From: Diadema antillarum
Lineage: Eukaryota
Assembly: GCF_040938485.1 (NCBI RefSeq)
Contig: NW_027272332.1
Location: 310,001-374,000 of the forward strand
Reading direction: 5' to 3'
Length of the DNA: 64,000 bases
The notes beneath the pieces were generated by a model. That model saw nothing but the letters and a program-made list of their open reading frames with translations. It searched no databases and was not told where the DNA came from. Numbering within the stretch: the first letter of the stretch is position 1; the number at the start of each line of letters is the position of its first letter. Position numbers and translations under genes: made by a program. Shown here one piece after another: positions 14,901-43,660 of the stretch.

Positions 14901-15386
14901 TATCTCAAACCAAAATAACGCTGCTTTCTGACCTGAATAGGCTTCAAATCAAAGAGTTTCTATTCTACCTCAAAATGAAATTGAAAAGATGGAAGACAAG
15001 TTAAAGAATAACAAACAAATCCTGTAGTATTGCATAGCACAGTCTTGTTTTTTTTTTGTATAATACATGTATCATGATAAAATTTTTAGAATACTTTTGC
15101 ACTTGAAGCTTGACTTTCGCTTTCTTTTCTTGATTTTTTCTTTGTTCATTTTATGGTCACTTACGTAAAACACTTGAAATATTCTTCTTCTTCTTCTTCT
15201 TCATCCTCTGGTTAAGCCTGACTCCTTCAATTTAAGATTCTTTATTACCAACATATATAGCGTATTTACCAAAAAATGTTCAAACGCTTTGCGTTGTCGA
15301 TAACAAAAACTATCGCCGATAATCTCAGCTTTATACAGAAGAGCACTACAGGCACAAAACCAGATACATTGTACATACCAGGTGCC

Positions 15387-15671
15387 AGGTAAAAATGTCA
15401 GAGGTAAAAATGTAAGAGGTAAAAATGTAAGAGGTAAAAATATCAGAGGTAAAAATGTAAGAGGTAAAAATATCAGAGGTAAAAATGTAAGTGGTAAAAA
15501 TATCAGAGGTAAAAATGTAAAAGGTAAAAATGTAAGAGGTAAAAATGTAAGAAGTAAAAATGTCAGAGGTAAAAATGCCAGAGGTAAAAATGTCTGAAGT
15601 AAAAATGTCAATCAGAGGTAAAAATGTCAACCTCTGCCATTTTTACCTCTGACATTTTTACCTGTGACATT
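15387..15671. repeat. 15-bp minisatellite (AGGTAAAAATGTMAG, about 16 units) followed by about 2.5 inverted units (foldback-like)
   Basis: Direct units run 15387-15629; inverted CATTTTTACCTCTGACATTTTTACCT units run 15631-15671. Confidence 0.9.
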
Positions 15672-16095: not shown

Positions 16096-19000
16096 CTACG
16101 GTTGGTTAAGGATGTTCCGGCGCACTTCTCTCACGTACTCCTCGTCGGGCAATGGGAAGCGTCTTGGGCTAGAGAGGTAGTCTCGGATACCAGGCTGCTG
16201 GGAAATATGATCGACGAATGCCTAAACCATGGATGTAAATAATACATAGACAGCGGGTGTTTAGCGACGGACAATGAATTTAGAAGAAAAAACAAACACA
16301 GAACGAAACACATTTATACAAGCAATCACATAATCATTAAAAAACAGAGCGAAAAAAATTTTTTTTTGAGTGATTCGGACACGAAATGAGATCTGTATTT
16401 CTCCGGTTTCATATGTTTTAGCAAGGCAGTAAAATCGGTCACAACAACTAGTATATAGTATAAAATCGAAAGAAATGATGGCGTTATGGTCTCAGAACTC
16501 TCCATCGAATTTGATTGATAGATTGATTAATTTTGTCCATGTATTTCTTTTTCATACCTGCATAAGTGTAACACAAAATCTATTGGACGGAGTTCAAGTA
16601 TTGTTTGATTTTAAGAGTTGAAACCGATAAGCGATGTTACGTACGATTTATTCCACGATAATATACAAAATCAAAACGAGCAGATGTTATCTTATGCATA
16701 TGCAAACTTAAGAATGACACGCACCTGCCATTCAAAAGACAAAATGAGCAACTCTAAATACAACAAATGCATGAGACCATCATCACACAAATAAAACGCT
16801 TGACAAGGATAATGTCCTCAAACATGGTTGAAGGTCAAAATCTACAAGAAGAACAGTAAGTAAGAAACTATTCAAAAAACAATTTTGTATTTTGAAATGA
16901 CACCCGGAGGTGTTAATCTAACACGATATATGAACACCAGAAATTTAACACCAGCTCGGTGTTTTATATTTAACACCGGACTTTTTTGCAGTGTGTATGT
17001 TAAAACTAGTTGTTATGCAACACGACACAACCAGAGACGAGAGTATTATATACGTATACTCTAAACCATAGGACTTTTGAAACGCTTGTCATAAAAGGAA
17101 TAATTGTCTACAATTCTTAGTTGTATTTACTTTGCACTGAGGAAAATCCGCCAGCACCTCCGTCAGAATGGGTATGTCGTCGAAGTAACTGACCGGATCA
17201 AAGAACGCTAGGTCAGCCATGGTCAAGGAATTGCCGACCAAGAAACCGGATTTGTTGGCGGTAAGCGTCTGCAACAAATAATATTGATCGAGCACGAGCA
17301 TCATTTTTGAGATTTCTTTGAAAGCTCTTTCTTATTTGATTTATAACGCGCATTAATAGCCGTCAAATATTGAAGCTTCATAATGTATCTGAATTTATGT
17401 TCAACCTGATGATAAAACATTTTCCTAACATGCCTAAGCAACTGGATAGTTCAATTGAATCAGCCTCTGATTTACGGAAGTTATTTAGGAAGGTTACACA
17501 GCCCAGGGATCCAGATTACACAAAACACGTGAAAGAAACATCCATTTATGCAATAGGATACATTCAGCAATCATCATCATCATCTCGTGTCATCACACAA
17601 CCATTTCCTAATGTCTAGCGCATGCAAGAGCCACGTCATTCGCCACTGCCAGGTCCCTCTCGGTACAAGGTTGTAACATTGTATTGCAGCTGAGAAGATG
17701 AGGCATAGTCTCGCTGCCCTGCCCACACTCACACTCTGCAGAGCTATCAGTGTACCCCCACTTCAGCATGTTTGCCTTGCACTTCCCCATGCGCGATCTT
17801 AATCTGTTCAAACAACGCCAGGTGATCCATGGCTGTTTGGAACCTGCAGGGAGTGACTCAATTAGATTGATTTGCATGTGATTGTCGTTCAGCAATGGAA
17901 GTATGATTATGTTATTATCACGTGAACCCCTGTTCAAGGCATGCAGGCAAAGCTGGTAAATTAGCTTTCGAACTGTCGATATTAAGGAATACAGCTTTGA
18001 AATGAAATCATGAAAATTGAGATGCCCAAAGTCATGAATTACATCTCATAGGTCAAGGCGATTAAATTTGCAGCACCGTCAGCCTGTATCTGTGCATTGT
18101 ATATAAATTCTCTATGATCGTCATTTTTTAAATCTTTACTTGAGGGCAGGTATCATTTTCATTCCCAAGTATTTCCGAAAATCTAAGGGTGTGGTAAATG
18201 AGAGAAGTACATTTACCTCTTTATTTATTCAGTTTGTTTCACATTAAGATATTGCAGCGACGGAATTGCCTAAAAGCCACCAAAATCTTTTTCGATGAAA
18301 TCAACACTGGTCGTGATTTTCCTCTTGTTGCGTGCCATTTATCGCTGGTGTTAATTGTGATGGAGAGGGTATCCTAAGGAAAATAAAGGCCAAACGATAT
18401 TTTGTTCTACTCGGAACGGAAAGTCCCATTTAACTAAAACCCCCTTTTTGTAATTTCATACATTCTCTCCTACTTACAAATCTGAATCGTGTTCGTAAAA
18501 AGTAGCATCTTTCGTTGACCGTAAGCTGGCTTTCTATGGAGGCGTTTTTCATGCTTATACTCAATTATCTTAATCTAGTAGTTACATGATTTTAACCTTT
18601 TCAAATATAGGGAGATAGCGTTCTCTGCTCTGCTTGGCTATGTTCTGTATGATTTCCTCCTGTTTCTCTGGTGGCGAGAATTTGAAACTTGGGAGCCCGG
18701 ACTTCAGCAGATCTCGTGCCCCAAGTGTGAGCATCTCAATCCTGGAAAGAAAAGAAAAGCGGAAACAATAGTATTAGTAACGAGCAATTATTGATAATTA
18801 TGATAAAAGTGATAACAACATGAGGGAGTAAGAACAAGCATTAAAACTGCAGATACGACATGCTTTAAAAAGGTACTCGTGCATCCATTAGTATGTGACT
18901 AATAGGGCAAACGGTTTGGACTCGGCTGAAGATATAATATACGAAGAATGTAACATGAAATGATAATAACCATATTGAAATCGTTATGATTTTGATTATA

Positions 19001-21301
19001 ATTATTAGGATGATAACAACAATAATGGTGATTTCTTTATCCGGGTAGTATCTTTATATCGTAAGCATTGTCATTCCAGTGGGCTCAGCCATGTTCTTTA
19101 CCCCAGCATTTAAGGCATTCCAGTCTGTGCACCTGGGTCACATTTATGGGGCATAAATTATAATGGATAAGAATATCTTGTCCATGGATAACGCTCTAGA
19201 TACACACCAGACAGGAGTTGAATCCAGAACCTCAAAGAGTCCACAACTATAATCCTCTTCATTTATAGAGTACTCGCACTGCAGATTAAGTGCAGCAAAT
19301 CTAACTGTATAAATCATAATGTATATGAGTTTACAGGTGAGAAAACTGTATAGGTCTATGAAAAGCAGCGATCGTCGCACGTCTGTATTTTTTACGCAGA
19401 GTATGAAGTATGAGTTTGTGAAACTTATAGAGAGCATCTATTATGCAGGTATGCACGTATGTAATACATTGTATATTTTTGACGAAGTCAATGCAGCTAT
19501 ATAACTGATATTAGGCCCTATCATAGTCATGACGTTCAACTTGATTTTGTTCTTCGGCTTTACGAATTCTTTAAATATGCTTAATTGGTTTATATTTTGT
19601 TTTGTTCGTTTGTTTGTTTGTTGTTGTTGATTTTTGTTTTTGTTTTTGTTTTTTTGTTTTTTGCTAGACATTTTCCTCGAATGCTGTGAGGGAAGTCAAA
19701 TTTAGGTTCTCACATGGCCTGATCTTTGTCTGTCTTTCCCATGAGACCCGCCTTGTTGCAGACATAGCGTAGGAGGGCGTCACTGCCTACCAAACAAATT
19801 CCGTCCATCTCCAGCAAAGGGATTTGGTTGAACAGCAGTTTCCCATCTGAACATTGAAAGACATATGGAATACAAGATATATGGATGACCACGCATGCGA
19901 AACGATATGGAGAAACGCATGCACCCATTATCGGTGTTGTCATTACGCCGTATTAACCGTGAATGTTCATCACGAAAAGGGCATTTGCCTCAGTGACTCA
20001 GGCGTGATTCTGAGGAAGTGATATAGTTTATTAATGAATATAATACAAACATGCACTCCGACTCTTTCCTTCATCTTGATTCGTTACATTGTTGAGGGTT
20101 ATCTCGTATAAGGATCAGAAGTAGGTGAATTTTGTCATTGTGCAAAGTGTGAAGTCGTTTGCAAAAGTATTCATTACTGATTTGATATTCATTTTTACTT
20201 GGTAATTAAAACATGCATACGAAAAAAAAAACACATCACAAATGAACAGCTATGACATGACCATACGAAGGGGGAAAGGGTTATTAAGTGAAGGGGTTAA
20301 TGAGAAGGCACTGCATGTGGCCTTACTATAAAACTAACCAAGGCAAACTAAGTACAGTGTTATGTCTTTTCTTTCTACTGCAGACTGTATGGGGACTGCA
20401 CTCCCCACCCCACCCCTTTTTTTTAGGGGGAGGGGAACGGGGACAAAATCGGAAAACGCAGTGCAACACTCCTCCCATCGCTCCTTTCCATCGAAGAGAA
20501 GGGGGAGGGGAGGGGGGGGGGGAAGGAAGGAAGCACTGACCCCTACAAACCCAACCCAACCATTCGGAATCTTTTCCCTGAAAGGTTCACAGCAATACCA
20601 TGAACTTTGAGATGTACAGGCACTTCTGTTCCCAGGTCCGATGTAGTGTTTTCAAAAAATTGAGAATTCAATAAGATAAGATGTCTAGCTTTCAAAATGC
20701 CATCACAGTTAAAAAACGTTGCTTGCCAATTTCTTTTAAAGGTCAAGGCTGCCATGCACGACTCCAATTTACCACACATTCAAAACGTATACACCTGTAC
20801 TTTGTATCACGGACAATTTGAGCTTGTATCACAACCTTTCAAACGAGGCGAAGGTCTAACTGAGTTTAAAGCCATATGAAGTTCCCCTAATATTGCTTTT
20901 AGATTGCTAGAATGATCAAATATATTTATCATTAGTATGACAATTAATGAATCAATGAGATATGTACGAGACATTTCAGGATAGCTTACCATTAATCAAC
21001 TGCAGAAAAGCTTCGCGTGAAGTCAGGTAGATGTCTTCATACTGGTAAAATTTACAAAAAGAAAGAAAAAAAAAAAGCCCCAGAGATACCCAAGAGTCCT
21101 AGTATAGGTCCGAGTATTTAGTTTACAACTTTGGCATAACAAATGCTGGTGATGAAATATTGCCCAACTTTTATGAAAAGGAAAAAAAAATACGCAACTA
21201 TAGGTATTTGGTGTGAGATATATTAACATCCTCATTCTTACAACCTATGCAAAGTAGTTAGTCACAGGTCTTTACTGTTTGTTCAAAACACACCGTGCAC
21301 C

Positions 21302-21336
<35 letters not shown>

Positions 21337-23408
21337 AGAAACAGAGAAATGCATTGTGCAATGCATTTCTCTGTTATGTGAGCGAATATAATATAGGTTT
21401 TCCCATTCATTTTCAAACTTTTTTCATTCAATTTCACAAATTTTTACTGCAATTTCGTCGCAGGATGTCGGGAATCTTACTTTCAAATTCGTCTTTCGTC
21501 CTTCATTTTCAAATAAAGTCCATTCAATTTAGTCATTTGGCATACATTTTCGTCATTTACAGTTCAAATTCGTCAGTCTCACTCGCAGAATTCAAAACAG
21601 CAGGATCGATTTCGTCTTTTGTTAATCATTTTCGTTAGATTTTCATTCATATTCGTCTCATATCTCTATCCGGTGTGATTTTCCGGTCATTCATGATTTT
21701 TTTTTCTGTAACCGTTCACATTTTACATTCAAGAGTTAACATACACACAAGTGCCTCCCCCCCCCCCCCCACACACACACAAGCAATCTGAGTACACACT
21801 GATACAAACAGACGTATCATCTCGCAAACGAAAACCCTGACAAACGATTTCTAGGCAAACATGATTAAAGACAAAATTTAAGTGTAGAATTGTAGCCTGT
21901 TTAATGTCAAAGAATGGACAACATAATTATGTAAGCTGCTTTCCATGGTACAAAAATTAAAGTTTGCTTCATGCATTATGATGCGAAAACCTGAACATTA
22001 CGAGATAAAGTTTAAGGGGTGACACTGACATACTGTCCTGGGTTATGTCTTATGACTGCCGTTTATCCTTCAATCAATTTTGGTTGGCAGTCATCTTTTT
22101 CGTATGTATTGTCAAAGCAAGTGGTTAGAGAATAATGTGTAACGATACAATTTACGAGAGAAAGTAAAAATATGTCGGCTTAAAGTTGGTTCACCATCAA
22201 AATAAAGAATCGACAACATCTGACTAATCTGAATGAAAAATTCATGAAATTATTGTGTGAACAAAGACGAATTCAATCTTCACATTCTGCGATCCGTCAG
22301 CGGGAGGGATGAATTTGAATGACAATTGACGATTCTGAATGCTATGTCTTCGAAAATGTTTGACGAAAAACGAATTACAGTAGGCGTTTTCACATCAGCC
22401 CGATAAAAATCCAAGCTCGAGATATTTTTTAATGTCCCAAGTCAGAAAAATAGCGCGCTCTTTCGAAACATCGGGCTGATGTGAAAACGCCCAATGACGA
22501 TTGACGAAATTGAAGTTAGGATTTGCGTTCCACGTGCTTCTCGGGACGAAATTGAATAATAAATCTTTGAAATTGAATGACAAAAGTGCGAAAATGGACG
22601 GGACAGCCTATACTATTATCCACTGACGTATACGACATATTGCAGGAACGTGCATCATGCTTAATGGCAGGCAAAACTGTACCGACTTGAAGATTTGTAC
22701 TTTGAGATTATACTGACGATAACATTAAAGTTGTACACATCCCTGCACACATACAGCCCTGCACACACACACATACATACATACATACACAAAATGATAG
22801 ATAAATGCGTTGTATGTGCGCGAATATCTATACAACGTACACGGCATTTTGCAGGAACGTGCATCATGCTTAATGGCAGGCAAAACTGTACCGACTTGAA
22901 GATTTGTACTTTGAGATTATACTGATGATAACATTAAAGATGTACACATCCCTGCACAAGCATAATTGTTATACACACACACATATTCCCTTAACTCAAA
23001 CAATACAAACACGCACGCACACACATATAAGACTCATATATACACACACATAGTACATTTACGATATGCGTTACTCATTGGCTGTTACAAAGTTCACTCA
23101 AGTTATCACATTCTTCCCCATCTGTGGCTCAGAAATTTGCTGGACTAGCCGTAGACCCTCACAAGAAAATGTACATAACAACACATTCAATAATTGCAAC
23201 TGTAACCTCTAACTTCTTTAGATATAATTGCTATTAAATGTCATTAGTTCTCACCGTGACTGCCCTGGGTATAAAGTCTATAAAGGCATGCAATAACTAG
23301 GTGTATATTACATCGTACCTCAATACCGCCAGCTACTAGCGCCAGTCGGGTGACTTCAGCGAGTCCGCGCCCGGGAGTGTACGTAAGTCGAGGTTTGCCG
23401 TCCGCCAT
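16096..23408 (-). CDS. GSTA: Glutathione S-transferase, alpha-class-like, copy A (227 aa)
   Basis: Exons 23408-23319, 21041-20990, 19846-19714, 18741-18597, 17268-17131, 16221-16096 (90/52/133/145/138/126 nt), all GT-AG, with an open frame. Motifs: KPRLTYTPGRG, KLLFNQIPLLEMDG, RERYLPIFEK, FLVGNSLTMADL. Confidence 0.95.
17573..17900 (-). mobile_element. Non-LTR retrotransposon 3' remnant in GST-A intron 4
   Basis: Translation LNRLRSRMGKCKANMLKWG...CECG...TMPHLLSC (a C-terminal CxC..H..C motif typical of LINE ORF2), followed by a (GAT)n tail. Confidence 0.75.
21392..22612. mobile_element. Degenerate 1.2-kb TIR element in GST-A intron 1
   Basis: The left end TATAGGTTTTCCCATTCATTTTC...CATTCAATTTCA matches the reverse complement of the right end TGAAATTGAATGACAAAAGTGCGAAAATGGACGGGACAGCCTATA. 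The internal TTCGTC/GACGAA motifs are mirrored. Confidence 0.6.
22641..22958 (+). repeat. 109-bp near-identical direct duplication (22641-22749 and 22850-22958)
   Basis: TGCAGGAACGTGCATCATGCTTAATGGCAGG...GTACACATCCCTGCACA occurs twice, separated by CA/CATA microsatellite. Confidence 0.9.
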
Positions 23409-25499
23409 GATATGGAGAGCGGGAAATGTTTCTTCAGGCGTCAAAATCAACTGCTGCCTGAAGTGCGTAATTGATGTTATGTATCAATGTAGATATGATG
23501 GCATTAACTTCTTGTCTTTACGACAATCTAAGCAACAGCGATCGTTTCCCAACCCTTGACCGGGGCTACATCAAAAGTCATAAAATTAGCCTTTTGACAA
23601 GGCTTCGATTCTCAACATTTTGAAACAAGATTGACAGGAGCGACAAGACTGCACTGAGGGACTACGATGCAGATTTTCGCTTTCAACCAACTCATTCTTT
23701 CTCTGATACTAATTGATTCTTTATACATCGGTTTTTGGTTGATAATTTACGTCCGAGGATTTCAAGTACTATGATGTCACCCTTTATTTAAAACATGGTA
23801 TATACATGTATTGTAATCAAAAATTTCATAATGGTGGCAAGGTGGTGAAAATGATAGCCTCATGTTGTATAACTACGTAGGATCTATACTATACACGGAC
23901 TTAGTCACGGCGGAAGCACACCCTCAATGACGAGAATCCACCAGAGAGGAATGAAATTCTACATGCACAATTGTTCAAGTTGATTTTATCAAACAAACAA
24001 ACAAAAAAAAACATGTAAAATCAGGTAAAGTATTTGATGGAAGTTTAACCTCAACCGGATGAAAAAAGAAAGTGATGGACTTGCTTTCACCGAATATTGC
24101 CTACAGTACATGAACTTGAGCCATCACAGCTAGAGTTTGGTGCTGGCGATTATAAGAGAAGAAAATGGCGTGAGAGGATATGATTGTACTACGCCGTAAG
24201 TTTATTGCTTGGCTGGTATAGAAATTATCTTTGGGTCAGGAACTTTAAAACTCACGATGAATACGAAAAATGGGGATCCCGATGACAATATCATAATGGT
24301 GTTTTCCCTGTTTATTTTGTACTTTCACGAAGAGATGTGCACGAAAGCACTAGCGACCATTCAATCGAATACATAACGCAACAAGATAACGCACTTCAAA
24401 GATATAAACGCTTGTCGGAAGTCCACTTTTCACAGTTAGACTACATACGTTCAGGAAAATTGTACATAAAAAAATCACCTGTATATTAACGGAATGGCTG
24501 GTTTCATTATAATGGTAGTTCGTATAGTTCTTAACTTGATCTCTTCACCGGGTGTGGAAAAGATCGACATGTATGGTTTCAATTTAAGCCTCGTTCACAT
24601 AAGAAATCTCTTGAATATTTTTGTTTTTGTCATTTTTTTTAAATTTTTCTTTCTTTGTCATATAAACAATATAAAAATCAATTCATTACAAGATAATACA
24701 ACTTTCCTTATGACAACATTAATTCCACACTGTTAATATTACGAATGAAAAAGAAAGAATTTTGAATATAAAAAAGGAATCTGCATCTGCATGGTACTTA
24801 CATACGTACACATACAGACACATGCACACAAACACTGTAATTTTTGTTTGATTACTGGACATGATCTCTGGGTCAAATTGGCCCCATTTTAAGCAGCACG
24901 TCTAGTAAAGATATCATGTTTGCCTATCATTGATTTGCAAAACTTCTTGTTTGCACATTCTAAGAATAAATACATAAAGACATATATTTCTACATTTACT
25001 CATTTCTATAGAAATTAGAACTTATTGTGCAACGAATGATACATTGGACAAAGTGCATGAACAGATTGACGAAAACACGTTAGCACAGAACAATACTTCT
25101 GGGCAATTTCAAAATCTCGGAGTAGTACGTTCACACTTTGAACAGACTAACAAATCATAATCATGGTAATAGCATCGGAAAATCTTTCTCGGCATCTTCA
25201 GGCTGACTACAGTACCAGTACGATGGTTCACACTATAAGCAACACAATAAGCAGTGATAACATGAAATGATTCATATCCTTCATTTTACACATACATTAG
25301 CCAAACGCAGAGTTTAGACATGTCAGTGACGTGGACAATCTAAAGGTAATCTTGTGTGGTTCAACGGTTACTTAAAGTTTACCCTGGTTATTTGTACTCT
25401 TCTCACTACTAGTCAACATGAATATAATTATGGATTTGAGTTTCCGTCAAAGAAAGCGTGTATGTAACAGAATTACAATCTTTTCGAACAAGACTACAC

Positions 25500-26580
25500 C
25501 TATACCCAAGAGAAAATGTCCTTCACTACTTGCACGAATTTCTCAGACAAAAGAGGAAAGTTGTGGGGACCAACCATGAACTCCTTCAAACCCGGTTGAT
25601 TTCGAAAGTGCTCAATAAAAGCCTGCACAGATGCGATGTCAAGGAGAAATAGAACAAACCAAACGCATAGAAGACAATAAGTAACTCTTGTAAAAATGCA
25701 GACAAATTGGTTATTAGGGGTTAGCGAGATAAAGTGTTCTTGAGATTTTAAGTTAAATCATAATTATAAGGTTAATAATGTACTTTGAAACAGTCACGTT
25801 GATGCCAGTATACAAAAACTGAATTAATCGTTAAAGGTCCTGTTTACCTTTGGGAACTTAAGTAATTGTAAAAATGTTCGAGATATGACATTTAATGCAT
25901 GTGTACGTCTCTTGTACCATGCACAAAACATACTACCACATGAAAAAAAAAATCGCGATAAAGCCTAAAATGTAAGGAAATATCTGTATTTTTCTCAATA
26001 AACTGTAACCGTATAGACGGTTTAGTCTGGAAACATTTTTATTGTAATTGTTCACATTTTATATTTAACAATTTAGACTTAACATCGATTTTACCGATTC
26101 AAATTTTACAGTGGTTGTTTCTATCCTTAACTCACATTTTAGAATTATTTTGAAGCACTAATGCTGAGTTTTTTGTTTCATCTGCAAATGGTAAATTATG
26201 CCTGTAAAAAACAATATCACTAACAAGGAGAAGCATGTCAAATATCCCAATCATGTCCAATAGTTCCCACAATGGTATTCTATACTTCATTCAGAACTCA
26301 TTTGTTCCACGCTTTACTTTACAAAATCCTTTAAAAATTTCGTCAAATGCCAATGGTTTGTTTGATAAAAACCGAAATGAAACAAACTTGTAATTGAAAT
26401 TGAATTTGAGCTTACTCTGCACTTGGGGAAGTTGGCGAGCTCTTTCTCCAGGTCGGGATCGTCGCTGATGATGCTCACGGAATCGTAGAACACGATGTCC
26501 GCCATGGACAAGCAATCGCCGACCAGGAATCCAGACGAGTTGTCTGTCAATGTCTGGAAGATTTCAATGTATATTATATC

Positions 26581-26623
<43 letters not shown>

Positions 26624-26626
26624 ATA

Positions 26627-26666
<40 letters not shown>

Positions 26667-27003
26667 AAAGTCACAGTTCAGTGTCTCACTGAAATCTAAA
26701 CAGATTTGAATATGCAAGTGTCAAAATTGATTGTATGATACAATCAATTTCACACTTGCATGTTCAAATATATATATATATATATATAGCGAAAACTTCT
26801 GACCACACGAGCAAACAGAGTTAAGGGTTTGGGACGAACACCGATCTAGGGCTTTCAATAGCTCAGTCGGTAGAGCACCGGTCTAGTAATCCGGAGGTCT
26901 CGGGTTCGAATCCCGATGAAAACCCATTTTCTTTGCTCAAAAAGTTTTCGCTGTTTATTATTACAATTGTTTCTGGTCAGTTTTTCCTTCCTTGTTTCAA
27001 AAC

Positions 27004-27047
<44 letters not shown>

Positions 27048-29875
27048 TATATTTGTGTGTGTGTGTGTGTGAGTGAGTATCTTTCATCAATGGAAAAACT
27101 TACAAATTGCCTGCATCCATTTCGCCTGATTTTAACAAATAAGCTACAATAAGACTATCAACAGTTGATCATTCTGTTGACGACTTCCTTCTATATGTCG
27201 GATTATCTCCGAAGTATAATGACGTAAAGAGTCAGCCATGTTCGGTTTCTTGTTTGGTTTGATATAGTACTTCTACATAAAATCATCAATTAAGTAGCCT
27301 AACATCCAGCAGCATAACGTAATCAAGTCGACACCAAAACAGAGGGGAAATACAGTAATGCAGGAGTAAGAGTGGGTGTGTGTAACATCTGTAGATAAGG
27401 TGGTAGGTCTTAAATGTATCGGGGAAAAAATATGTCTTTCTGCCTGAATCTATGATGGCAAGTATAGAAAACCTCATGTGAACGGTGTACAGACAGAGTT
27501 TTATGTGACCTTTTCAAAGACGGGAAGATACCGTTCCCTGGCTTCTTTGAGACCGCGCTGCAATTCTTGGTCCTTCCTCTCTGGCTCAAAGAATTTGAAC
27601 ATTACAAGGCCTGCCTTCAGCATGTCTCGGGCTCCATGCGACAACATTTCAATCCTAGAAAAGAAGAGATAACAGCTTTTTTCATGCCACGTCAAGTAAC
27701 GTGACATTTTTGCATCCCTCTTCAGAAAGACAAAATTTCGCCTGAATAGACATGGCAAGAAGATCATTTTCTCTTTGCCTTTTTACGAGCTTGTATCTGG
27801 ATAAGTCAAACACAGTTTCCACAACCTTTCACTCTTAAAATGAATGACAATGTATTACTAAATGTATAATTATATACTGTGACATTGCTAAGCGAAAGAA
27901 AGTGGACATGAAAGGATAAGATTACACCGGAAAGCATTACTCATGCTTTCCTAAAGTGGAAATAGTCACAATCACTATGCAAATTTATAAGATGAGGCGA
28001 GGCTTTAGTTTATCGTCCATTGACTTATATATAGACACGTTAATCAATTTCCATGCTTGAGGTCAACTCATTGCAGGGTACATTATCTTTGCAATGTTGG
28101 CTTTATAAGGGGAGAATTGTAGTCGGACCTATATTATGTCAGCTACCAAATACATGTCCTTTGTAACACACTTCTGTATACTATTTTATGAAGCCTGTGA
28201 GAAAATTGTGAAAATATTAAAATCAACACATTTTAATTTTTTTAGCACAATGAAAGGGCACTTGACTCGCTTCTCTTAGAAAGCAGGGTGAACAAGAACC
28301 ATTTACATAATATGTCAAGAACAATTAAGTCCAGGGAAATTGTACTTTTTGCGACTTTTTTTGTTGTGGGGGGGGGGGTATTGCTCACTTGATCTCTTCG
28401 TCAGACGTCTTGCCCATGAGTCCTCCTTTCTTGCAAACATAGCGGATGATGCAATCACTCCCGATCAAATTTTTGCCGTCGATTTCGAGGAGAGGGATTT
28501 GTTTAAACATCAGTTTCCCGGCTTGACAAATAAAAGGGACCAGAAAAAGGAGAAAAGAAAGTCATGGCAAGAAGGCAATTTCCGGGACGTCTCCAAACAT
28601 GGTGACAACTTATTTGACGTCGCCAAAATGCCTCCACGACATCTCTGATACGTCTACTTAGTCGCGGAGACGTCTCCACAACGTCTACACATCCTCGCCG
28701 CGTGTATAGGTGTCCATGGGTCTCCGCAAGTCGCGGACAAAATTAGTCTCCGCGACTTGGTCGCAACTAAGGAGACGTCGCGGAGACGTCTACGAGACCA
28801 ACCGGAGACTATACAGTGCTATAGAAAAAGTCTCTGAAAAAATGGACATGTTCGATTCTCTCGCGATTCCCCGCATGGAGACCAGGCTAGTCCTGTCGCA
28901 GGGAACGTCACGGAGACGTCTCCGAGACCAGCGAGACTCGAGTCGCTACCAAATTATCTCCAATTTTTGTAGTCTTACAAACAGCAAGACAACTGAATAT
29001 CTAGAGCCTTTAATAGTACTCACTCTCGATTAGTTTCAGAAAATCTTCTCTCGTCGCCAGGTAGGCATCCTCGTACTGAAGAGAAAAATACAAGACAGAG
29101 AGAGATGACGAAAAGATAAGAAAAAACAAATACACATTCATGAATATTAATCTGCAGCTGGTAGGCACGCAAAAGATAATGGCGCGGTTGGTGCGTTCCC
29201 TAATAATATTGAGAGGAGGTCTTGTGGTTCAGTGGATAAGACAAGGGACAATTATCACTTATACAAGGTCCCTGGTTCGAGTCACCTAGCAACAGCCGTT
29301 GTGCCCCACTCTAAGCACGGCACCTTATCCTCACAGACTCGTCATTTAATTCAGTTCAGTTCAAATATATTTTTATTTTTCCACAAAGCATACATTTCTC
29401 TTGCTTTTGTCACAGAGAATAAGGAAAAAAGGGGGCAATATGAAATGAAGTGAACAGAGTATACAACAATAGTGAAGCGTTATAGTAATTATACATTGTA
29501 ATACTGAAATGATCAGGATGAAGTGAACAATATGCAATATGCCCCCTCAAAAAAAATGGAGGGAGGGACCCGCTGAAAAATACAATGTTTGTAGAATGTG
29601 GGCCTCCGTGGGGAAAAAAAAAGATCAGTATATAAACATAAAAATTTTATGTTTAGTCAAAGAAGAAAACGGGTTTGAACAGCTTACATATTAATCTCCT
29701 AGCTCCGTAAGTATTCTATAGTAAACAACATAAATATGGCTCTGCTGGCGGGTTTGGAACACGTACCTGTGTTCACAGACCTCACCTCTATTTTGGCGGC
29801 AGCCAGTGCGATCCGTATGGCTGACGAAAATCCCCTGCTAGCTGTGTATGTTAACCGTGGTTTCGAGTCCGCCAT
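25500..29875 (-). CDS. GSTA: Glutathione S-transferase, alpha-class-like, copy B (226 aa)
   Basis: Exons 29875-29786, 29075-29024, 28521-28389, 27654-27510, 26553-26416, 25622-25500 (90/52/133/145/138/123 nt), GT-AG, open frame. MADSKPRLTYTASRG...KLMFKQIPLLEIDG...RERYLPVFEK...FLVGDCLSMADI...VKDIFSWV*. Confidence 0.95.
25835..26215 (+). mobile_element. Dispersed repeat fragment with a TTAA|AGGTC terminus (GST-B intron 5)
   Basis: A reverse-complement copy lies at about 35285-35672 (shared TGTTTACCTTTGGGA and GTTTCATCTGCAAATGGTAA). Confidence 0.7.
26704..26769. repeat. Near-perfect 66-bp palindrome next to the tRNA-like cassette
   Basis: ATTTGAATATGCAAGTGTCAAAATTGATTGTA-TGA-TACAATCAATTTCACACTTGCATGTTCAAAT. 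Confidence 0.85.
26849..26926 (+). tRNA. tRNA-Thr(AGT)-like sequence, probably a pseudogene or SINE head, in GST-B intron 4
   Basis: A box (TAGCTCAGTCGGTAGAGC), anticodon loop CT-AGT-AA (26885-26887), variable loop AGGTC, T arm TCGGG-TTCGAAT-CCCGA and a downstream TTTT. The acceptor stem is irregular (extra base and a mismatch) and the anticodon stem has a T-T mismatch. Confidence 0.55.
28575..28975. repeat. Palindrome-rich repeat element in GST-B intron 2
   Basis: Repeated GAGACGTCTC, GTCGCGGAGAC and CGCGAC motifs in both orientations. It has no counterpart in GST-C intron 2. Confidence 0.6.
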
Positions 29876-30143
29876 GGCCGTTGCCGATGGTACGAATATG
29901 AAGAAAGCAAACACAGCACGCTGAGCACACGACACAACAGGGCAGTCCTATGATCTCACGTTGCCAATTTGATTACACAAGATCAATTTTCCCTTAGATA
30001 CGCGTGTTAACAATAATGAAATGAAAAAGAAAATAATGAATGGTTCAATTATGTCGAAATTATATTCTATGATTTTGTTCTGATTGGTCAATGTTTCTAG
30101 CATTAAGGGACCGACTTCTTTGACATGTTCCCGTTTCCCCTAA

Positions 30144-30772
30144 AGGGTAATTCCCGACCAGCTAAATGTTAGTCTGATAACAAAGAGTTTAATTCTAAAA
30201 CCTTAACAAATGAAAATTTGTTCAAAAATTATCAGTTAAAAGTGACCAGGATTAAGGAACAAGTTCGATGAACGTAACATTGTTGAGTTTCGCCAACTTT
30301 CATGAAATCGCTCTTGAATAGTGAGGACATGATTACATGCAAATGAGTGAGTTGACGATATCGTGGCTTCACAACTTCCCTCGTAGTGTGTACACAAATC
30401 TTAAAATTTCCAGGGGTTTTGTTGTTGTTGTTGTTGTTGTTTTGTTCAACGCCATACTGCTCCTGTGTCTGATCCTAATTCGTCTAGCTGATCATTTTGA
30501 AGTTATTCAACCAGGAATAGCGTGTTTTAAACATTTATAGCACGAACAAATATGGACTTTGATTTTATTATCGTACACGATTAACAAAAAATTGGGATGA
30601 CATCAGTAGCTCACTCAATCATTCGCATATTGCTTTACAACAATTCACGAAACTTCACAATTTCCTAATGTTAGTGATATTTGTCTACTACGGATTAGAT
30701 TTTCACTGTTGTGTTTATCAGATATTACTTTTTCCTTCCATACCAACTTTTAACTGGTCTGAAATTCCCCTT
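30144..30772. mobile_element. Degenerate relative of the 49845-50455 MITE, about 270 bp upstream of the GST-B ATG
   Basis: AAGGGTAATTCC...GTTAGTCTGATAA ... TAGCTCACTCAATCATTCGCATATT ... CTGAAATTCCCCTT. Confidence 0.6.
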
Positions 30773-31021
30773 TTAGAGCGAGAGAAGGCAGTGTCGTTTA
30801 TTGGAAACATTGAGAATTTAGGGCTTGAATTTTGAAGAAGTAATCCCTGTTGCAGCTTTTCGTGGGAAGCTATACTGGGATGGTACACGGTGACATCAAC
30901 GGCCAACGCACAGAGTGTATTTACAGTCTGATGGCAAATATACTAGTAATCAGTTATACAAAATAAAAATTTTGCCATGTGCAAGTAAAAACCAAACCGG
31001 TGGATTTATGCATTCTGGATC

Positions 31022-31290
31022 CTACTGGGGGCTGCATATGTTCCGAATAGATGAGAGGGCAGCCTCTTGGAAAGCAGTACGTGTTCTTGAAGTAATTGTA
31101 GAGTATGGTAGGCGGTTCCACAGTTTTGTTGTTCTTCGGGAGGAATGAATATTTGTATGGATCAATTGTAGCTTCCGGGACTGTGTATTTGAGGAGGCGG
31201 TCATTTCTGCCAATATAAGTTGCTGGGATTATGATGGCTGGGAGGGAGATGTTCACCTGTTTATGTTGTATTTTGTAAAACATTGTTGCT
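31022..31290 (-). mobile_element. Frameshifted LINE (L2/CR1-group) ORF2 C-terminal remnant
   Basis: YKYSFLP in one frame continues as RTTKLWNRLP in another, matching the YSFFPRT..WN.LP motif. Confidence 0.65.
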
Positions 31291-32332
31291 TGTGCAAGAA
31301 GACGGCGGGTGAGTAACAGGTCCCAGTCTAACTTGGATAGTAATGGTGTGACAGGAGATGAACGTCTGTAGGGGGTTAAGGTGCGGTTTGGGGAAAGTGA
31401 AGGGGTTGTGTATACACAGATGGTGCCAAATAGTTGAAAACGTTTACAGTTCGTTATTTCGGAGGTTCCTTTATGATGAAATTAAATGAAAATGAAATAA
31501 GGTTCATGAATCCGAAGGTTTGTTAGTAGGACGTATACGCACCGCCTTTCCATTTTCCTGCTGAAAACGGAATGATTTTGGTCTTTCTGACAGTGTATAC
31601 GGTACAATAAAAAAGGTTTCTGGTGTGTTTGGTTGTGTTTTTTTTTCAGTGAAATTGCGGACTACGTCTCAGACCTTTATTTGACGTCAATGCCGATCCA
31701 CCATATACCAGCGATGCATGATGTCCATTGTGTTGTAAATACTAACAACTACATATTGTTATGTATGATGTCTCCAACTTTCATCTGATATTTCACACAG
31801 ATCACTCTACAATCTTCTCGTTCCCATGGTTACACTGAGTTACTCTGACACTGTTTTCTTCAGATTTTATCATATAGCACATCGCCATCTCCATCTGCTA
31901 TAATGGTATAGGCGCCCACTGTTTTGTAAAGGCATAACGTTTATAAACTTCAGCATTTGCACCTCTGCAAAAATGTTACATTGAACCCTTCCGGAACGAA
32001 TGAAGTGTTATTCTGTTTTTAACTGTACATACGTGCAGATATCTCAAAGCGCTTTTGTATCCATCGCACTAAATCAATATTAATCACACTATGATGATAA
32101 TGATTACAAGGTTTATAATAACATTTTTCACACGCTAGAAAATCTTCTCATGAGGTCAGGCAGACAGCTCCATACTATGGCAGAATTTATTCAGAAACGA
32201 AAATGAGAGATGTTCCGAGAGTCAGTTGTATAATGATGACAGTTACCGAGTATTACTTGTTAACAGTTAACCCAAGTATTAATACACTATCACAATATCA
32301 TATTTATCTACACGATGAGTAAGGCCACTTTT

Positions 32333-32335
<3 letters not shown>

Positions 32336-32390
<55 letters not shown>
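32336..32390. repeat. (CA)n microsatellite; other (TA)n tracts at 26585-26662, 26767-26787, 27008-27050, 40650-40690, 62415-62475 and poly-C at 4900-4950
   Basis: Direct reading of the sequence. Confidence 0.95.
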
Positions 32391-32393
<3 letters not shown>

Positions 32394-33661
32394 GACGCAC
32401 AATTACACACGTATACATAACGCCCTTACACATCTACGCCCACACACACATTCAGATGAACAACGCATTTTGTTAAATACATTGTACAGTGTAACTAGAC
32501 AATGTTCAAGTATGCAGATATCATGATTGCGTATTACTATCAATTTGCAAACACCTTCGCTTGGACCTTCCAAAGGAAACAATGAAAGACATTTTTTCTA
32601 TACTTGCATTTTATTACTTAAACAACTGTGGAACGATCGATACATTTCACGGTTAGTGAACAGACTGACAAAACATGACATGAACATTTTTTCTCGGCAG
32701 CTTCAAATTCCCTGAGTGCCAGTATGATGGTTCACGTTCGATCAGCCACATAACGACAGGAACGGCTGATACATTTCACACATAAGCCAATCACGTAACA
32801 GAAGTTTATACACAAGGTCATGTCAGTGACATTAAAAAGGTTTAAAATCAATCTATTAGCGGTTCAAGACCCGTGTTGCTTGAAAAGTTTTTACCAGGTA
32901 ACAATGATGGTTCGAATCCACTTTAAGTACGATCTTTAGGGCAAACTGCTTTCAAAGACAAAGACATGTCATTGCCCAGCGATGCCAGGAAACATTATAC
33001 CCCTGTAATTGTACAAGAGGGATAGAGACCATAAAATATCTTGCCCGAGGAAGTATACGCATCGGGCGGGTTTGAAACTATAGCTTCTCCTATTCAACAG
33101 TGTTTGAGATTTCTACAATGCGTTAAATTATACCAGGTACAAGGCTTAATAATCCATACACTGTACTACGAACACTCTCTCTCTCTTTCACAGAAATACA
33201 AAAATAAAATAATTCTTATCTTTTCATAAAGAGTTGTAGTGGAAGATAGAAAATAAGAAAATCATCCTTTGCATCAATTACATTTTGGTAATAAAACAAA
33301 ATAAAGAGGAAATATTATCTATAGCACAGATTACAGAGATGCAATGACTATCATGCTCTAAAAGGAGATGGTTACAGTTGCTTAATCCTAATTTTAAGTT
33401 AAAGTAAGAGTTTTGAAACGTTATGAGACGATAACATTGTTACTATTAGGGCAGCCTCTTGTAATCTGCATATACCTGGTTGCGAATGGTATGAACGTTT
33501 TGTGAAACTTCAGCATTCAACAATCTGCTGTTTTGCTGTCCACCATATCTCTTGAAACCTTGCACTGTCCTGCTGGTTTCATTCTTTACCCTTCTCCCTA
33601 CCGCCAACGTGCTATAGGAAACATGGACTAAGAGTTTCCGTTAAAGAATGCATGTCCTTAA

Positions 33662-34058
33662 AGGGATAGTAGAGTTTCAGGTGAGATGGGGCTTCAGGTT
33701 TCTAACCTTTTTTGATGATAAGTTTTTTGAGATGATGGAAAGCCTCTTATTAGATATGAAAGATCATATAATTCTCAGAGGAATTCAAAGATAATTTGAT
33801 GAAAATAGGTTTTGAAACGGCTGAGATATAAAAAAAGCGATCCTACTATAAAGGTGGGACCCACCTTTTACTAGGATCGCTTTGTTTTTGTTTGTTTTTA
33901 GATATCTCGGCCATTTCAAAACCGATTTCCATGAAGTAAACGATGAATTATTCCTCTTAGAATATGTATGCTCTTTTGCATTTCACAAAGTGGTTTCTAA
34001 GTATCTTGCAAAAAGTTAGAAGCTGAATCCTCACCTCAACCGACACTATATCATCCCT
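33662..34058. mobile_element. Palindromic TTAA-type MITE 30 bp past the GST-C stop codon
   Basis: TTAA|AGGGATAGT ... ATCATCCCT. The centre of symmetry is near AAAGGTGGGACCCACCTTT. Same family as the copies at 2193, 43835 and 44332. Confidence 0.85.
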
Positions 34059-34087
34059 TTCAAAGAAATACGATCTACTTGAACAGA

Positions 34088-37000
34088 CTATGGTATGAGA
34101 AAGACGCCCTTCACTTCTTGCACGTGTTCGTCGGACGGGGGAGGGAAGTTGCGAGGACCAGTCATGAACTCCTTCAAACCCGGTTGACTTCGAAAGTGCT
34201 CAATGAAAGCCTGCACAGATGCGATGTGAAAGGGAACAAAGAATAAACCACATGCATATATAAGAAGACAATGATAACTCTGGTCAACAAACAAAAAACA
34301 CGTTATTAGGAGTGAGTAACATGGAAGAAAGCGCGTGTTCTGTTTATTTCATTTGCATAATATTAGTTCATTTTCCTTTTTTGCAGGGGGAAGGTAGATT
34401 CTTGAGCTAGAGAGAGCGAGACAATGGCCCCAGGAGACGAAAAGATAAGCAATAATGACGTGCTATGGTCTTGTGACTGATGTTAATACATCTTGAGCTT
34501 ATATACTGATGTATCACGCTTAACGCCGGTCCACGAGAACTGAATAATGGTAGAAACAAAGCCAGTTACAAGGAGCAAGTGATCCAATATTCTCACATGT
34601 CTTACCATGATGTGTTCTTTATTCAAAACCCATTGTTCAACGCTTTACTTCACAACAAAATTTAAGAATTATTGTCAGTGGTCTCTTCGATGGAAACAAA
34701 CTTAAAAACCATAACGTCAATTTGAAATTGAAATTGAATTCGAGCTCACTCTGCACTTGGGGAAGTTAGCTAGCTCTTTCTCCAAGGCGGGATCGTCGCT
34801 GATAATGCTCACGGAATCGTAGAACACGATGTCCGCCATGGACAAGGAACCACCGACCAGGAATCCAGACGGATTGACTGTTAGGGTCTGGAAGATGCAA
34901 AAAAAAAAAATTACATTACACAAAATATTTTAGTGACAACTAATAACTAGCCGACAGCCATTTCGCCTAATGCCAACAAGTATAAGCCTTACTGCAAATA
35001 CCATATTATATTCCAGTTGACGACTTTCTGCTTGATAATGTAGTTCTAATCGTCAGATTATATCCGAAGTATGTTCTATCATCAAAATGACATAAGGGTC
35101 AACACAATTGCGGCTATGATATGTTACGGTTCAGTTTCACTTTCACTTTTTATTTCTCAACTTGTACAAATGAAATAGTTATGACAAAATCAACAATTTT
35201 CACATCAAAATGGGTTGTACACAATAATACTAAGAAAAATATACAATTACGTATATGACGTATACGCACAAACTACATATCTTTTCAAGGCATGATTACC
35301 ATTTGCAGATGAAACAAAAACCCAGCATTGGTGCTTCAAAATAGTTTTAAAATGTTAGTTAGGGAAAGAAACAACCAATGTAAAAATTTGAATCAGTATT
35401 ATCAATGTTAAGTATTGTTAAATAAATGTTAATGTGAACAATAGTTACAATAAAAATGCTTCTAGACCAAACCGTCTGCAGTTATGGTTTATTGAGAAAA
35501 ACAGTCATATCTCCTTGAAAATACACAAATATAGGCTTTACTGCAAAAACTTTATATGGTAGGATGTTTTTGTGATACCGTTTACTGACCTACACATATG
35601 CATCAAATTAATGTGATATCTTTAACATTTTTTACATCACTGCTCCCAAAGGTAAACAGGATCGACCTTTAAAAGCAAATTAATGTTAAGGTATACAGGT
35701 GCATGGAGGAGACTGTCATTCATAAGCAATTCCCTTGACTGGGATTACAGTCTCTTGGGGATATCTTAAAAAATGATAATTCTCACTTAAATTTAACTGC
35801 AAGAGCAACACAAATACGCAGATAAACAATCTATAGATACATTACAGAATTACGCCTCAAACCAAGGCAATAACACCAACGTGTCGGAGCAAAGCAAAGG
35901 TGTCTTATATGCCCGAATAATTCAATTTGTTCTTCTTCAATTTGACTCAGTCTGTCCTCTTCATAAAGTTATTTGGCAGAATAATTTTAATGCCCACACC
36001 AGTCATAGTGCAGCATAATGCAGTGACGCAGAAGTCCTGTAACAAATCACTCGTACCAGAGTGCGAAACAACTGTAAAGAGAAGGCGGTAGTTTTCATGG
36101 TAATGGTATAGTAGTAATTTTGCCTTTCTGCATGGATATGTATTTATGGTAGTGCGTTTTTGAGCTCCATAGACCCTGTGTGTGACAAAGAGCGTTGTCT
36201 CACCTTTTCAAAGACGGGAAGATACCGCTCCCTGGCTTCTTTGAGACCGCCCTGCAATTCTTGGTCTTGCTTCTGTGGTTCCACGTACTTGTGCATCACG
36301 AAACCTGCTTTCAACATGTCTCTTGCTCCCATAGACATCATTTCAATCCTGGGATAAGAAATTAAAAGGTAAAATAACGTTAATTTACACGACATCACGT
36401 GACAATGGCGGATCCAGGCGGGGACGCACCAGGCGCACCCCCCTTTATCTTTATTTTTTGTTAAAACAAAAAAATAGATAAAAAGAAAAAATGGGAGTGG
36501 GGTGCGTGCGCTTCCCTTTAATTTTGCAAAGGCTCCCCTACTTTACGGAATTCCTGGTTCCGCCCCCGCGTGACATGCCATGTTTGCATCCTCTTGTAAG
36601 ACAGACAAAATATTTGTAAAACTTCCCTGCATTGGTCTTCCCCAGATGTGACAGGTCCAGATGATAATAATAGTTTGCTTTGCGCACTTTTATGAAGTTG
36701 TATCTGGATAAATCAGACATATTTTCTTCAACTCCACATTAAAGTGAAATGTTACTTCATGTTCACTCTCACCTCAAATAGAAAATGTAAACGGTATTCT
36801 CTGTTTAACTTCATCGAAGCTGGATATAGAATTACACTTTTGCCAACAGAAAATATCACAAAGTATTAACAAGGTAATAGTGGTGACGAGGATATGCAAA
36901 TTAGAATAGGTTATGTTATATTTTACAAAAGAATACACATGACACAGGGCGTTAGCAAGGATTATCCACCCGATATAGTAACTTTGGATCAGTCGGAAAC

Positions 37001-43660: not shown

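Follow-up and report, generated by a model that had tools for sequence, protein, structure and literature searches.

The 64,000-nucleotide stretch of Diadema antillarum DNA analysed here, hereafter the window (positions 310,001 to 374,000 of contig NW_027272332.1, numbered from its first letter), carries three intact glutathione S-transferase (GST) genes on the minus strand of 16096-43660. To find the genes, named A, B and C, we first made a six-frame translation of the minus strand and then looked for the second exon, which is short. The outer coordinates are exact, 16096 being the final base of the stop codon of A and 43660 the A of the ATG of C. Judged by its sequence, the region carries in tandem three alpha-class paralogues of the GSTA4-like ancestral type, which are of expressed type and selectively maintained. 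Their distinctive conserved change, as read from the alignments, is Gln67 to Gly in the glutathione site (G-site), and Ile45 and Asp/Glu69 go with it. The features of the locus are collected in Table 1.

Table 1. Coordinates of the three GST genes and of the codons of their helix-3 motif in the window
Feature	Position	Strand	Remark
GST gene A, 227 aa	16096..23408	-	exons rebuilt from sequence
Gene A coding exons	23408-23319, 21041-20990, 19846-19714, 18741-18597, 17268-17131, 16221-16096	-	last exon includes the stop
GST gene B, 226 aa	25500..29875	-	exons rebuilt from sequence
Gene B coding exons	29875-29786, 29075-29024, 28521-28389, 27654-27510, 26553-26416, 25622-25500	-	
GST gene C, 227 aa	34088..43660	-	exons rebuilt from sequence
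Gene C coding exons	43660-43568, 39790-39739, 38918-38786, 36348-36204, 34887-34750, 34210-34088	-	
Motif codons in gene A (GSDA)	19776-19787	-	LVGSDALL sits in exon 3
Motif codons in gene B (G-S-D-C)	28451..28462	-	aligned to Q67-T68-R69-A70 of mammalian GSTA
Motif codons in gene C (GSDC)	38848-38859	-	

Each gene consists of six coding exons, of 90 or 93, 52, 133, 145, 138 and 123 or 126 nucleotides, and the sizes of 52 and 133 nucleotides presumably match those of human GSTA exons. All 15 introns are of the GT-AG type and no internal stop occurs in A, B or C, as an earlier note on this DNA had claimed in calling the frames and splice sites intact. The donor of exon 4 in gene A is a weak GTTAAA. 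When the three proteins were searched against the 64-kb window by tblastn, only these 18 exons were matched, and there were no extra copies or relic exons in it.

Are these gene models the right ones? The protein of gene B is identical at 226/226 positions to the RefSeq protein 'glutathione S-transferase alpha-4-like [Diadema antillarum]' (P0151), so the splicing of B has been reproduced independently. The RefSeq model of gene A (XP_071504012.1) is a truncation of 144 amino acids which reads through the exon-4 donor, and gene C is divided into XP_071504014.1 (93 amino acids, exons 1-3) and XP_071504013.1 (142 amino acids, exons 4-6). In Diadema setosum, the orthologue of gene A (P0206, 228 amino acids) is full length, its exon sizes and its GTTAAA donor being those of A, and the orthologue of gene C (P0208, 226 amino acids) is full length and about 96% identical. 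When the exon boundaries of A and C are moved onto the D. setosum genome, they yield both RefSeq proteins exactly. Because the orthologues match exon for exon, we take the full-length models of A and C to be right and the annotation of D. antillarum to be incomplete; it can be corrected at two genes, A having been cut to a partial model and C broken in two. Full-length database searches were made with P0151, the twin of B, and with the D. setosum orthologues standing in for A and C. On the D. setosum sequence OZ188204.1 the orthologues of C and A adjoin, 3.9 kb apart, with no copy of B between them. At synonymous sites B and C stand 0.39-0.40 apart, which is more than the 0.14-0.17 between the two species. 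Thus B is an older duplicate, absent at the D. setosum locus.

Then are the three copies maintained, or are they decaying? The ratio of nonsynonymous to synonymous substitution rates (dN/dS, Nei-Gojobori method) is 0.17 for A/B, 0.14 for A/C and 0.25 for B/C among the paralogues, and for the orthologues of D. antillarum and D. setosum it is 0.21 (A) and 0.10 (C). A has diverged from B/C to the point of saturation at synonymous sites, so these copies are old, yet all of them are still open. One might suppose that A, B and C are unexpressed or decaying copies, young pseudogenes which merely look intact, and this would account for the shortened A and the divided C in RefSeq. The incomplete D. antillarum models, the weak GTTAAA donor of A and the empty result of the run searches, which listed no RNA runs for this DNA, are in line with such a supposition. 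Against it are the open frames with 15/15 GT-AG introns, the dN/dS of 0.10-0.25, the age of the split between A and B/C, the full-length orthologues of A and C in D. setosum RefSeq with the same exons and the same donor, and the complete RefSeq model of B. Pseudogenes are hence very improbable here, and we rejected them on the intact frames, the low dN/dS and the conserved orthologues. As far as can be read from the DNA itself, decay is excluded and the genes are under purifying selection. The changes in the G-site were proposed to be selected rather than signs of decay, and the dN/dS values in both paralogues and Diadema orthologues bear this out.

To which class of GSTs do the proteins belong? 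The protein of gene B (P0151) matches the Pfam families GST_N (E-value 4.1e-8), GST_C (1e-11) and GST_C_3 (4.9e-18), and each of the three matches clears its curated cut-off. Peptides from the exons of A and C match the same families; taken as single exons, exon 3 gives a weak match and exon 4 none. The two domains of the cytosolic GST superfamily, a thioredoxin-like N-terminal domain and an all-helical C-terminal domain, are both present. In a phmmer search of the Protein Data Bank (PDB), alpha-class proteins were the best matches (chicken A3, mouse and human A4, then A1-A3, with E-values from 1e-37 to 1e-29), followed by sigma-like and nematode GSTs at 1e-22 or weaker and by pi at about 1e-10. 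Membership of the sigma class was rejected, its PDB E-values being 15 orders of magnitude worse than those of the alpha class. An AlphaFold2 model of B, built with 44 homologues, has a mean predicted local distance difference test score of 94.6, a predicted template-modelling (TM) score of 0.92 and a C-terminal helix at 213-223. The top 50 hits of this model in a Foldseek search of the PDB are all alpha-class chains, with TM-scores of 0.85-0.94 and root-mean-square deviations of 1.5-1.9 Å. The predicted fold is that of the alpha class, including alpha-9, an additional C-terminal helix which covers the active site. By these matches and the predicted fold, A, B and C are alpha-class GSTs of the A4-like type, and this type appears to be ancestral. 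Tyr at the position of GSTA4 Tyr212 occurs in amphioxus, lamprey, hagfish, abalone, sea cucumber, bird A4 and most urchin proteins.

The three genes differ at this very position, which is Tyr in A, Phe in B and His in C (last exons 16120-16221, 25503-25622 and 34091-34210). Gene A also has Phe111 and Val216, residues of GSTA4 type in the hydrophobic-substrate site (H-site). The series Tyr/Phe/His suggests that the H-site diverged after duplication, and the H-site of gene A suggests conjugation of alkenals or of lipid-peroxidation products.

The residues of the G-site were read from a MAFFT alignment in the numbering of mammalian GSTA1, and a HMMER alignment of exon 3 to solved GSTA1/A2/A3 chains likewise puts G-S-D opposite Q67-T68-R69. 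All three proteins have Tyr9, Arg13, Arg20, Ile45, Gln54-Ile/Val55-Pro56, Gly67, Ser68, Asp69, Asp101, Lys104 and Arg131. Position 15 is Leu in A, Phe in B and Leu in C, and the motifs are LVGSDALL in A, LIGSDCII in B and LIGSDCIV in C. These states agree with what the earlier note had read, both for the residues that are kept (Tyr9, Arg13, Arg20, Q-[IV]-P, Asp101 and Arg131, by alignment to mammalian GSTA) and for those that are changed (Leu/Phe/Leu15, Ile45, Lys104 and the three motifs, by HMMER and MAFFT). Its view of which changes are remarkable holds in part. The pair Gln67-Thr/Ser68 was said to be lost; Gln is indeed gone, but the hydroxyl residue is kept, and Ser68 is an ordinary variant which is also seen in the solved horse GST A3-3 (6zj9, 'VQSRAIL'). 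The missing GSTA1 residues had been taken together as hallmarks. Gly67 and Ile45 are distinctive, but Arg15 and Glu104 are not. Position 15 is Leu in a brittle star, Phe in a crinoid, Cys in a hemichordate, Leu in a sponge and mostly Leu or Phe in sea cucumbers, so Arg15 marks the chordate and mollusc members and not the whole alpha class. Position 104 is variable everywhere outside jawed vertebrates. As both are already variable in non-chordate alpha-like GSTs, Arg15 and Glu104 were rejected as lost hallmarks. The uniqueness of Ile45 was overstated too, since this residue is also found in opossum GSTA3 (PMC10526480) and, in our alignment, in bird GSTA4.

How much of the G-site is then left? 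The residues listed for the alpha class are Tyr9, Arg15, Arg45, Gln54, Val55, Pro56, Gln67, Thr68, Asp101, Arg131 and Phe220 (PMC10526480). Tyr9 is present in A, B and C and in 20/20 urchin relatives, and Gln54, Val/Ile55, Pro56, Asp101 and Arg131 are present as well; Arg15, Arg45 and the Gln of the pair at 67-68 are the class features that are absent. In a crystal structure of hGSTA1-1, glutathione is contacted directly by Arg131, Thr68, Asp101 and the carbonyl of Val55 (PMC3584069). This set (Arg131, Thr/Ser68, Asp101 and the backbone of residue 55) is retained together with the catalytic Tyr9. A crystallin-like structural role had been considered for the proteins, but no evidence for it was found; in S-crystallins the catalytic residues are lost and the protein is very abundant in its tissue, and here Tyr9 and most G-site residues are conserved.

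Is Gly67 a peculiarity of these three genes? A profile of the exon-3 peptides of A, B and C was run against 1.84 billion representative proteins and followed up by a profile search with a word index. Among the 149 representative clusters most like exon 3 (175 matched domains), position 67 is Gln in 160, Glu in 8 and Gly in 7. The Gly cases comprise five of the urchin family, four from named urchin species and one fragment, and two of unknown origin. Twenty full or nearly full urchin alpha-like GSTs were then compared, coming from D. antillarum, D. setosum, Strongylocentrotus purpuratus, Lytechinus variegatus and L. pictus, with one further transcript. Gly67 is present in all 20, Ser68 and Asp/Glu69 in nearly all, and Ile45 in the majority; none of the urchin alpha-like proteins retrieved has Gln67. 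Tyr9, Arg13, Gln54, Pro56, Asp101 and Arg/Lys131 are likewise kept in 20/20. Other states fixed in urchins are Lys53, Asp162 and Cys181, an acidic residue at 69, and a hydrophobic residue in place of the lost Glu97. In a maximum-likelihood tree the 20 proteins form one clade (support 95/96), which holds several paralogue lineages common to Diadema and the camarodont urchins. The proposal of a divergent subfamily is thus borne out by five species and one clade, but the feature is not special to the three genes; it is the norm for the sea urchins sampled.

Outside the urchins the picture is different. The sister of the urchin clade, with weaker support (84/73), is a clade of sea-cucumber alpha-like GSTs (P0168, P0210-P0217), which have Glu67-Ser/Thr68 and in which Asp101 is replaced by Ser or Ala; the tree was midpoint-rooted and this echinozoan node is moderately supported. 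Gln67 is kept in a brittle star (Amphiura), a crinoid (Anneissia), a hemichordate (Ptychodera), amphioxus and Ciona, and also in abalone, Aplysia, a sponge and all vertebrates sampled. Ile45 is specific to urchins within echinoderms, the other echinoderm classes sampled having Arg or Lys. Since the urchin proteins all have Gly67 and fall in one clade while the other groups have Gln or Glu, the alignments and the tree indicate that Gly67 arose once before the split between Diadema and the camarodonts and has been kept through repeated duplication since. That split is old within the echinoid class. No starfish or cidaroid sequence was among those retrieved, and within the echinoderms the change from Gln67 to Gly is placed by Diadema, camarodonts, sea cucumbers, a brittle star and a crinoid. 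A second, unrelated alpha/sigma-like GST group, seen in P0081 and P0135 from a Logan assembly, has Gly-Thr-His at this place and lacks Gln54 (FEDLP). Because of this group, Gly at position 67 must have arisen more than once overall.

What do such proteins do? As to glutathione binding, catalysis and the class of substrate, we infer that A, B and C are fairly probably working dimeric and Tyr-dependent transferases which use glutathione, with a looser or more water-mediated hold on both of its ends. The G-site would have been remodelled once on the sea-urchin stem, where Gly replaced Gln67, Ile replaced Arg45 and position 69 became acidic. Tyr9 would activate the thiol, and the groups that still hold the peptide would be the residue-55 backbone next to cis-Pro56, Gln54, the hydroxyl of Ser68 with the N-terminus of helix 3 and, from across the dimer, Asp101 and Arg131. 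With the side-chain contacts of Gln67 and Arg45 to the two glutathione ends gone, affinity is probably lower or binding more water-mediated. Gene A would keep an alkenal-type H-site like that of A4, from which B (Phe212) and C (His212) would have moved away. Tyr9, Gln54, Ser68, Asp101 and Arg131 are conserved across the urchin paralogue lineages, and a disused pocket would drift, which argues that a ligand of the glutathione type is still bound. Further, urchins without a side chain at 67 keep Asp101 and sea cucumbers with Glu67 have lost Asp101, which suggests redundant partners for the gamma-glutamyl end. The pattern is complementary and fits a pocket in which each echinozoan lineage keeps one acidic or polar partner.

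Several points weigh against working glutathione transferases. Gly at position 67 is rare among the clusters most like exon 3. The accepted G-site residues of the alpha class include both Gln67 and Arg45 (PMC10526480), and their double loss could seriously weaken glutathione binding. Searches of the accessible literature brought up no enzymology, glutathione-affinity or expression data for any urchin alpha GST, and, as said, no RNA runs were listed for this DNA. Our literature searches found no paper characterising a sea-urchin alpha-class GST, its G-site residues or its expression in pigment cells; a defensome paper on diatom aldehydes leaves GST unmentioned.

If glutathione affinity was cut by the loss of Gln67 and Arg45, with Arg15 absent too, could the proteins be carriers instead? 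They would then be non-catalytic or weakly catalytic proteins of the ligandin type, serving chiefly to carry hydrophobic or anionic ligands that bind in the H-site or the dimer cleft. Possible ligands are the naphthoquinone pigments specific to urchins, haem or bile-pigment-like compounds, and fatty-acid derivatives. Two listed G-site residues are replaced clade-wide, the charge at 69 is reversed and Glu97 has become hydrophobic, so that the start of helix 3 and the region of helix 4 are remodelled. We take positions 69 and 97 to lie at the dimer interface. The several paralogue lineages per species are what one expects of binding proteins with diversified ligands, and the H-site position 212 is unlike among A, B and C. 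On the other hand, Tyr9, Gln54, Pro56, Asp101 and Arg/Lys131 in 20/20 urchin proteins, and Ser68 in nearly all, are unexpected for an unused pocket, and the classical ligandins, which are alpha-class GSTs, are themselves active enzymes. On balance a carrier role is rather unlikely.

A change of the thiol co-substrate is less likely still. Here the loss of two groups that are positive or polar, together with the new carboxylate at 69, would have tuned the pocket to a thiol other than glutathione or to an analogue that differs at the gamma-glutamyl end; candidates are ovothiol, gamma-Glu-Cys, Cys-Gly and a decarboxy-type analogue. Sea-urchin eggs hold millimolar ovothiol; ovothiol is also present in animals whose alpha-like GSTs keep Gln67, and to our knowledge no GST uses it. 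The changes do lie where both ends of glutathione bind, and there is an engineered precedent in the same turn, hGSTA1-1 T68E with decarboxy-glutathione (1pl2). However, the holders of the gamma-glutamyl carboxylate and amine (Ser68, Asp101, Arg131) and of the cysteinyl backbone (55 and cis-Pro56) are kept, which fits glutathione, and nothing in the analysis ties ovothiol to GSTs. The altered thiol and the ligandin role, both raised in the earlier note, gained no support of their own and keep a low probability; the conserved Tyr9, Gln54, Ser68, Asp101 and Arg131 argue that a ligand of the glutathione type is still bound. A more radical version supposes that the whole alpha-class repertoire of urchins was re-engineered, either for a non-canonical thiol (ovothiol, or truncated or decarboxylated glutathione) or for glutathione in a new pose, with the protein's own Asp/Glu69 replacing the role of the ligand or of Gln67. 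This seems to us a little more doubtful again. Glutathione-using transferases with a loosened G-site are the preferred reading.

The surroundings of the array deserve a brief description. An open exon of 319 amino acids (57387-58346), likewise on the minus strand and some 14 kb upstream of gene C, matches Pfam MFS_1 with an E-value of 1.1e-11; it is the 'SLC16-like' transporter of the earlier note. No evidence was found for the functional link with the GSTs suggested there, and it was rejected, as what could be shown is a reading frame of MFS type at this distance. Three open reading frames on the minus strand, 17608-17937, 30954-31283 and 46372-46728, resemble the C-terminal tails of proteins of retrotransposons without long terminal repeats, and the first of them sits inside intron 4 of gene A. 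In gene B the fourth intron contains long TA-rich microsatellites at 26570-26720 and 26980-27080, which translate as YIYIYI. Just downstream of gene A there is a minisatellite (15201-15630) with units of about 30 nucleotides, giving LTFLPLIF or IFTSD repeats in several frames.

How much of this is new? RefSeq already contains the proteins, whole or in part, with names assigned automatically, and the family, class and fold are textbook knowledge. What is added is Gly67, with Ile45 and an acidic residue at 69, as the signature of the echinoid alpha class, while sea cucumbers show another solution and the other ambulacrarians sampled are canonical at 67. By alignment, tree and dN/dS, the pocket variant is real, old and selected, in a well-known enzyme family. 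If the Gly67/Ile45 pocket still catalyses efficiently, two listed G-site determinants of the alpha class are dispensable in nature, and together with the sea-cucumber combination of Glu67 and no Asp101 this would amount to an experiment of nature on how redundant the recognition of glutathione is. If the pocket does not support catalysis, urchins would have converted their whole alpha class to carriers or to another thiol. Such a conversion would matter, because bulk 'GST activity' is widely used in urchins as a biomarker of pollution and stress. The finding is moderately interesting for GST enzymologists and otherwise of little surprise.

How do the urchin proteins compare with GSTs that are already known? 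The closest are the vertebrate GSTA4 type (mouse 1guk/1b48, human 1gul/3ik7) and chicken GSTA3 (1vf1), which are the best matches with E-values from 1e-37 to 1e-34 and about 33-36% identity. The likeness covers the predicted fold, with a TM-score of about 0.9 over the full length including the C-terminal helix, and the residues Tyr9, Arg13, Arg20, Gln54-Val55-Pro56, Asp101, Arg131 and Phe52, the dimer 'key'; gene A shares Tyr212, Phe111 and Val216 with GSTA4 in addition. Unlike these vertebrate proteins, those of urchins have Gly67 for Gln, Ile45 for Arg, Leu/Phe15 for Arg and Asp69 for Arg, and have lost Glu97. Human A4 has Gln at position 45. The sea-cucumber GSTs of Apostichopus japonicus and Holothuria leucospilota (P0168, P0212, P0216, P0217) resemble the urchin proteins in having lost Gln67 and in having mostly Leu/Phe15. 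They differ by Glu67, Ser/Ala101 and Lys/Arg45. Glu67 is the usual state in the theta, zeta and plant GST classes.

The remaining comparisons concern single sites of the pocket. The mu class naturally carries R-G-L at the Arg15 site. The same R-G-L occurs naturally in the solved GST 5d73, and hGSTA1-1 R15L (2r3x), with Leu at the Arg15 position as in A and C, was crystallised with S-hexyl-glutathione bound. Unlike the urchin proteins, both 2r3x and the R-G-L GSTs keep Gln at the equivalent of 67. In hGSTA1-1 T68E with decarboxy-glutathione (1pl2), the turn where helix 3 begins likewise carries a carboxylate, which suggests that this turn can retune the glutathione analogue that is used; the carboxylate is there engineered and at position 68, while that of the urchin proteins is at 69.

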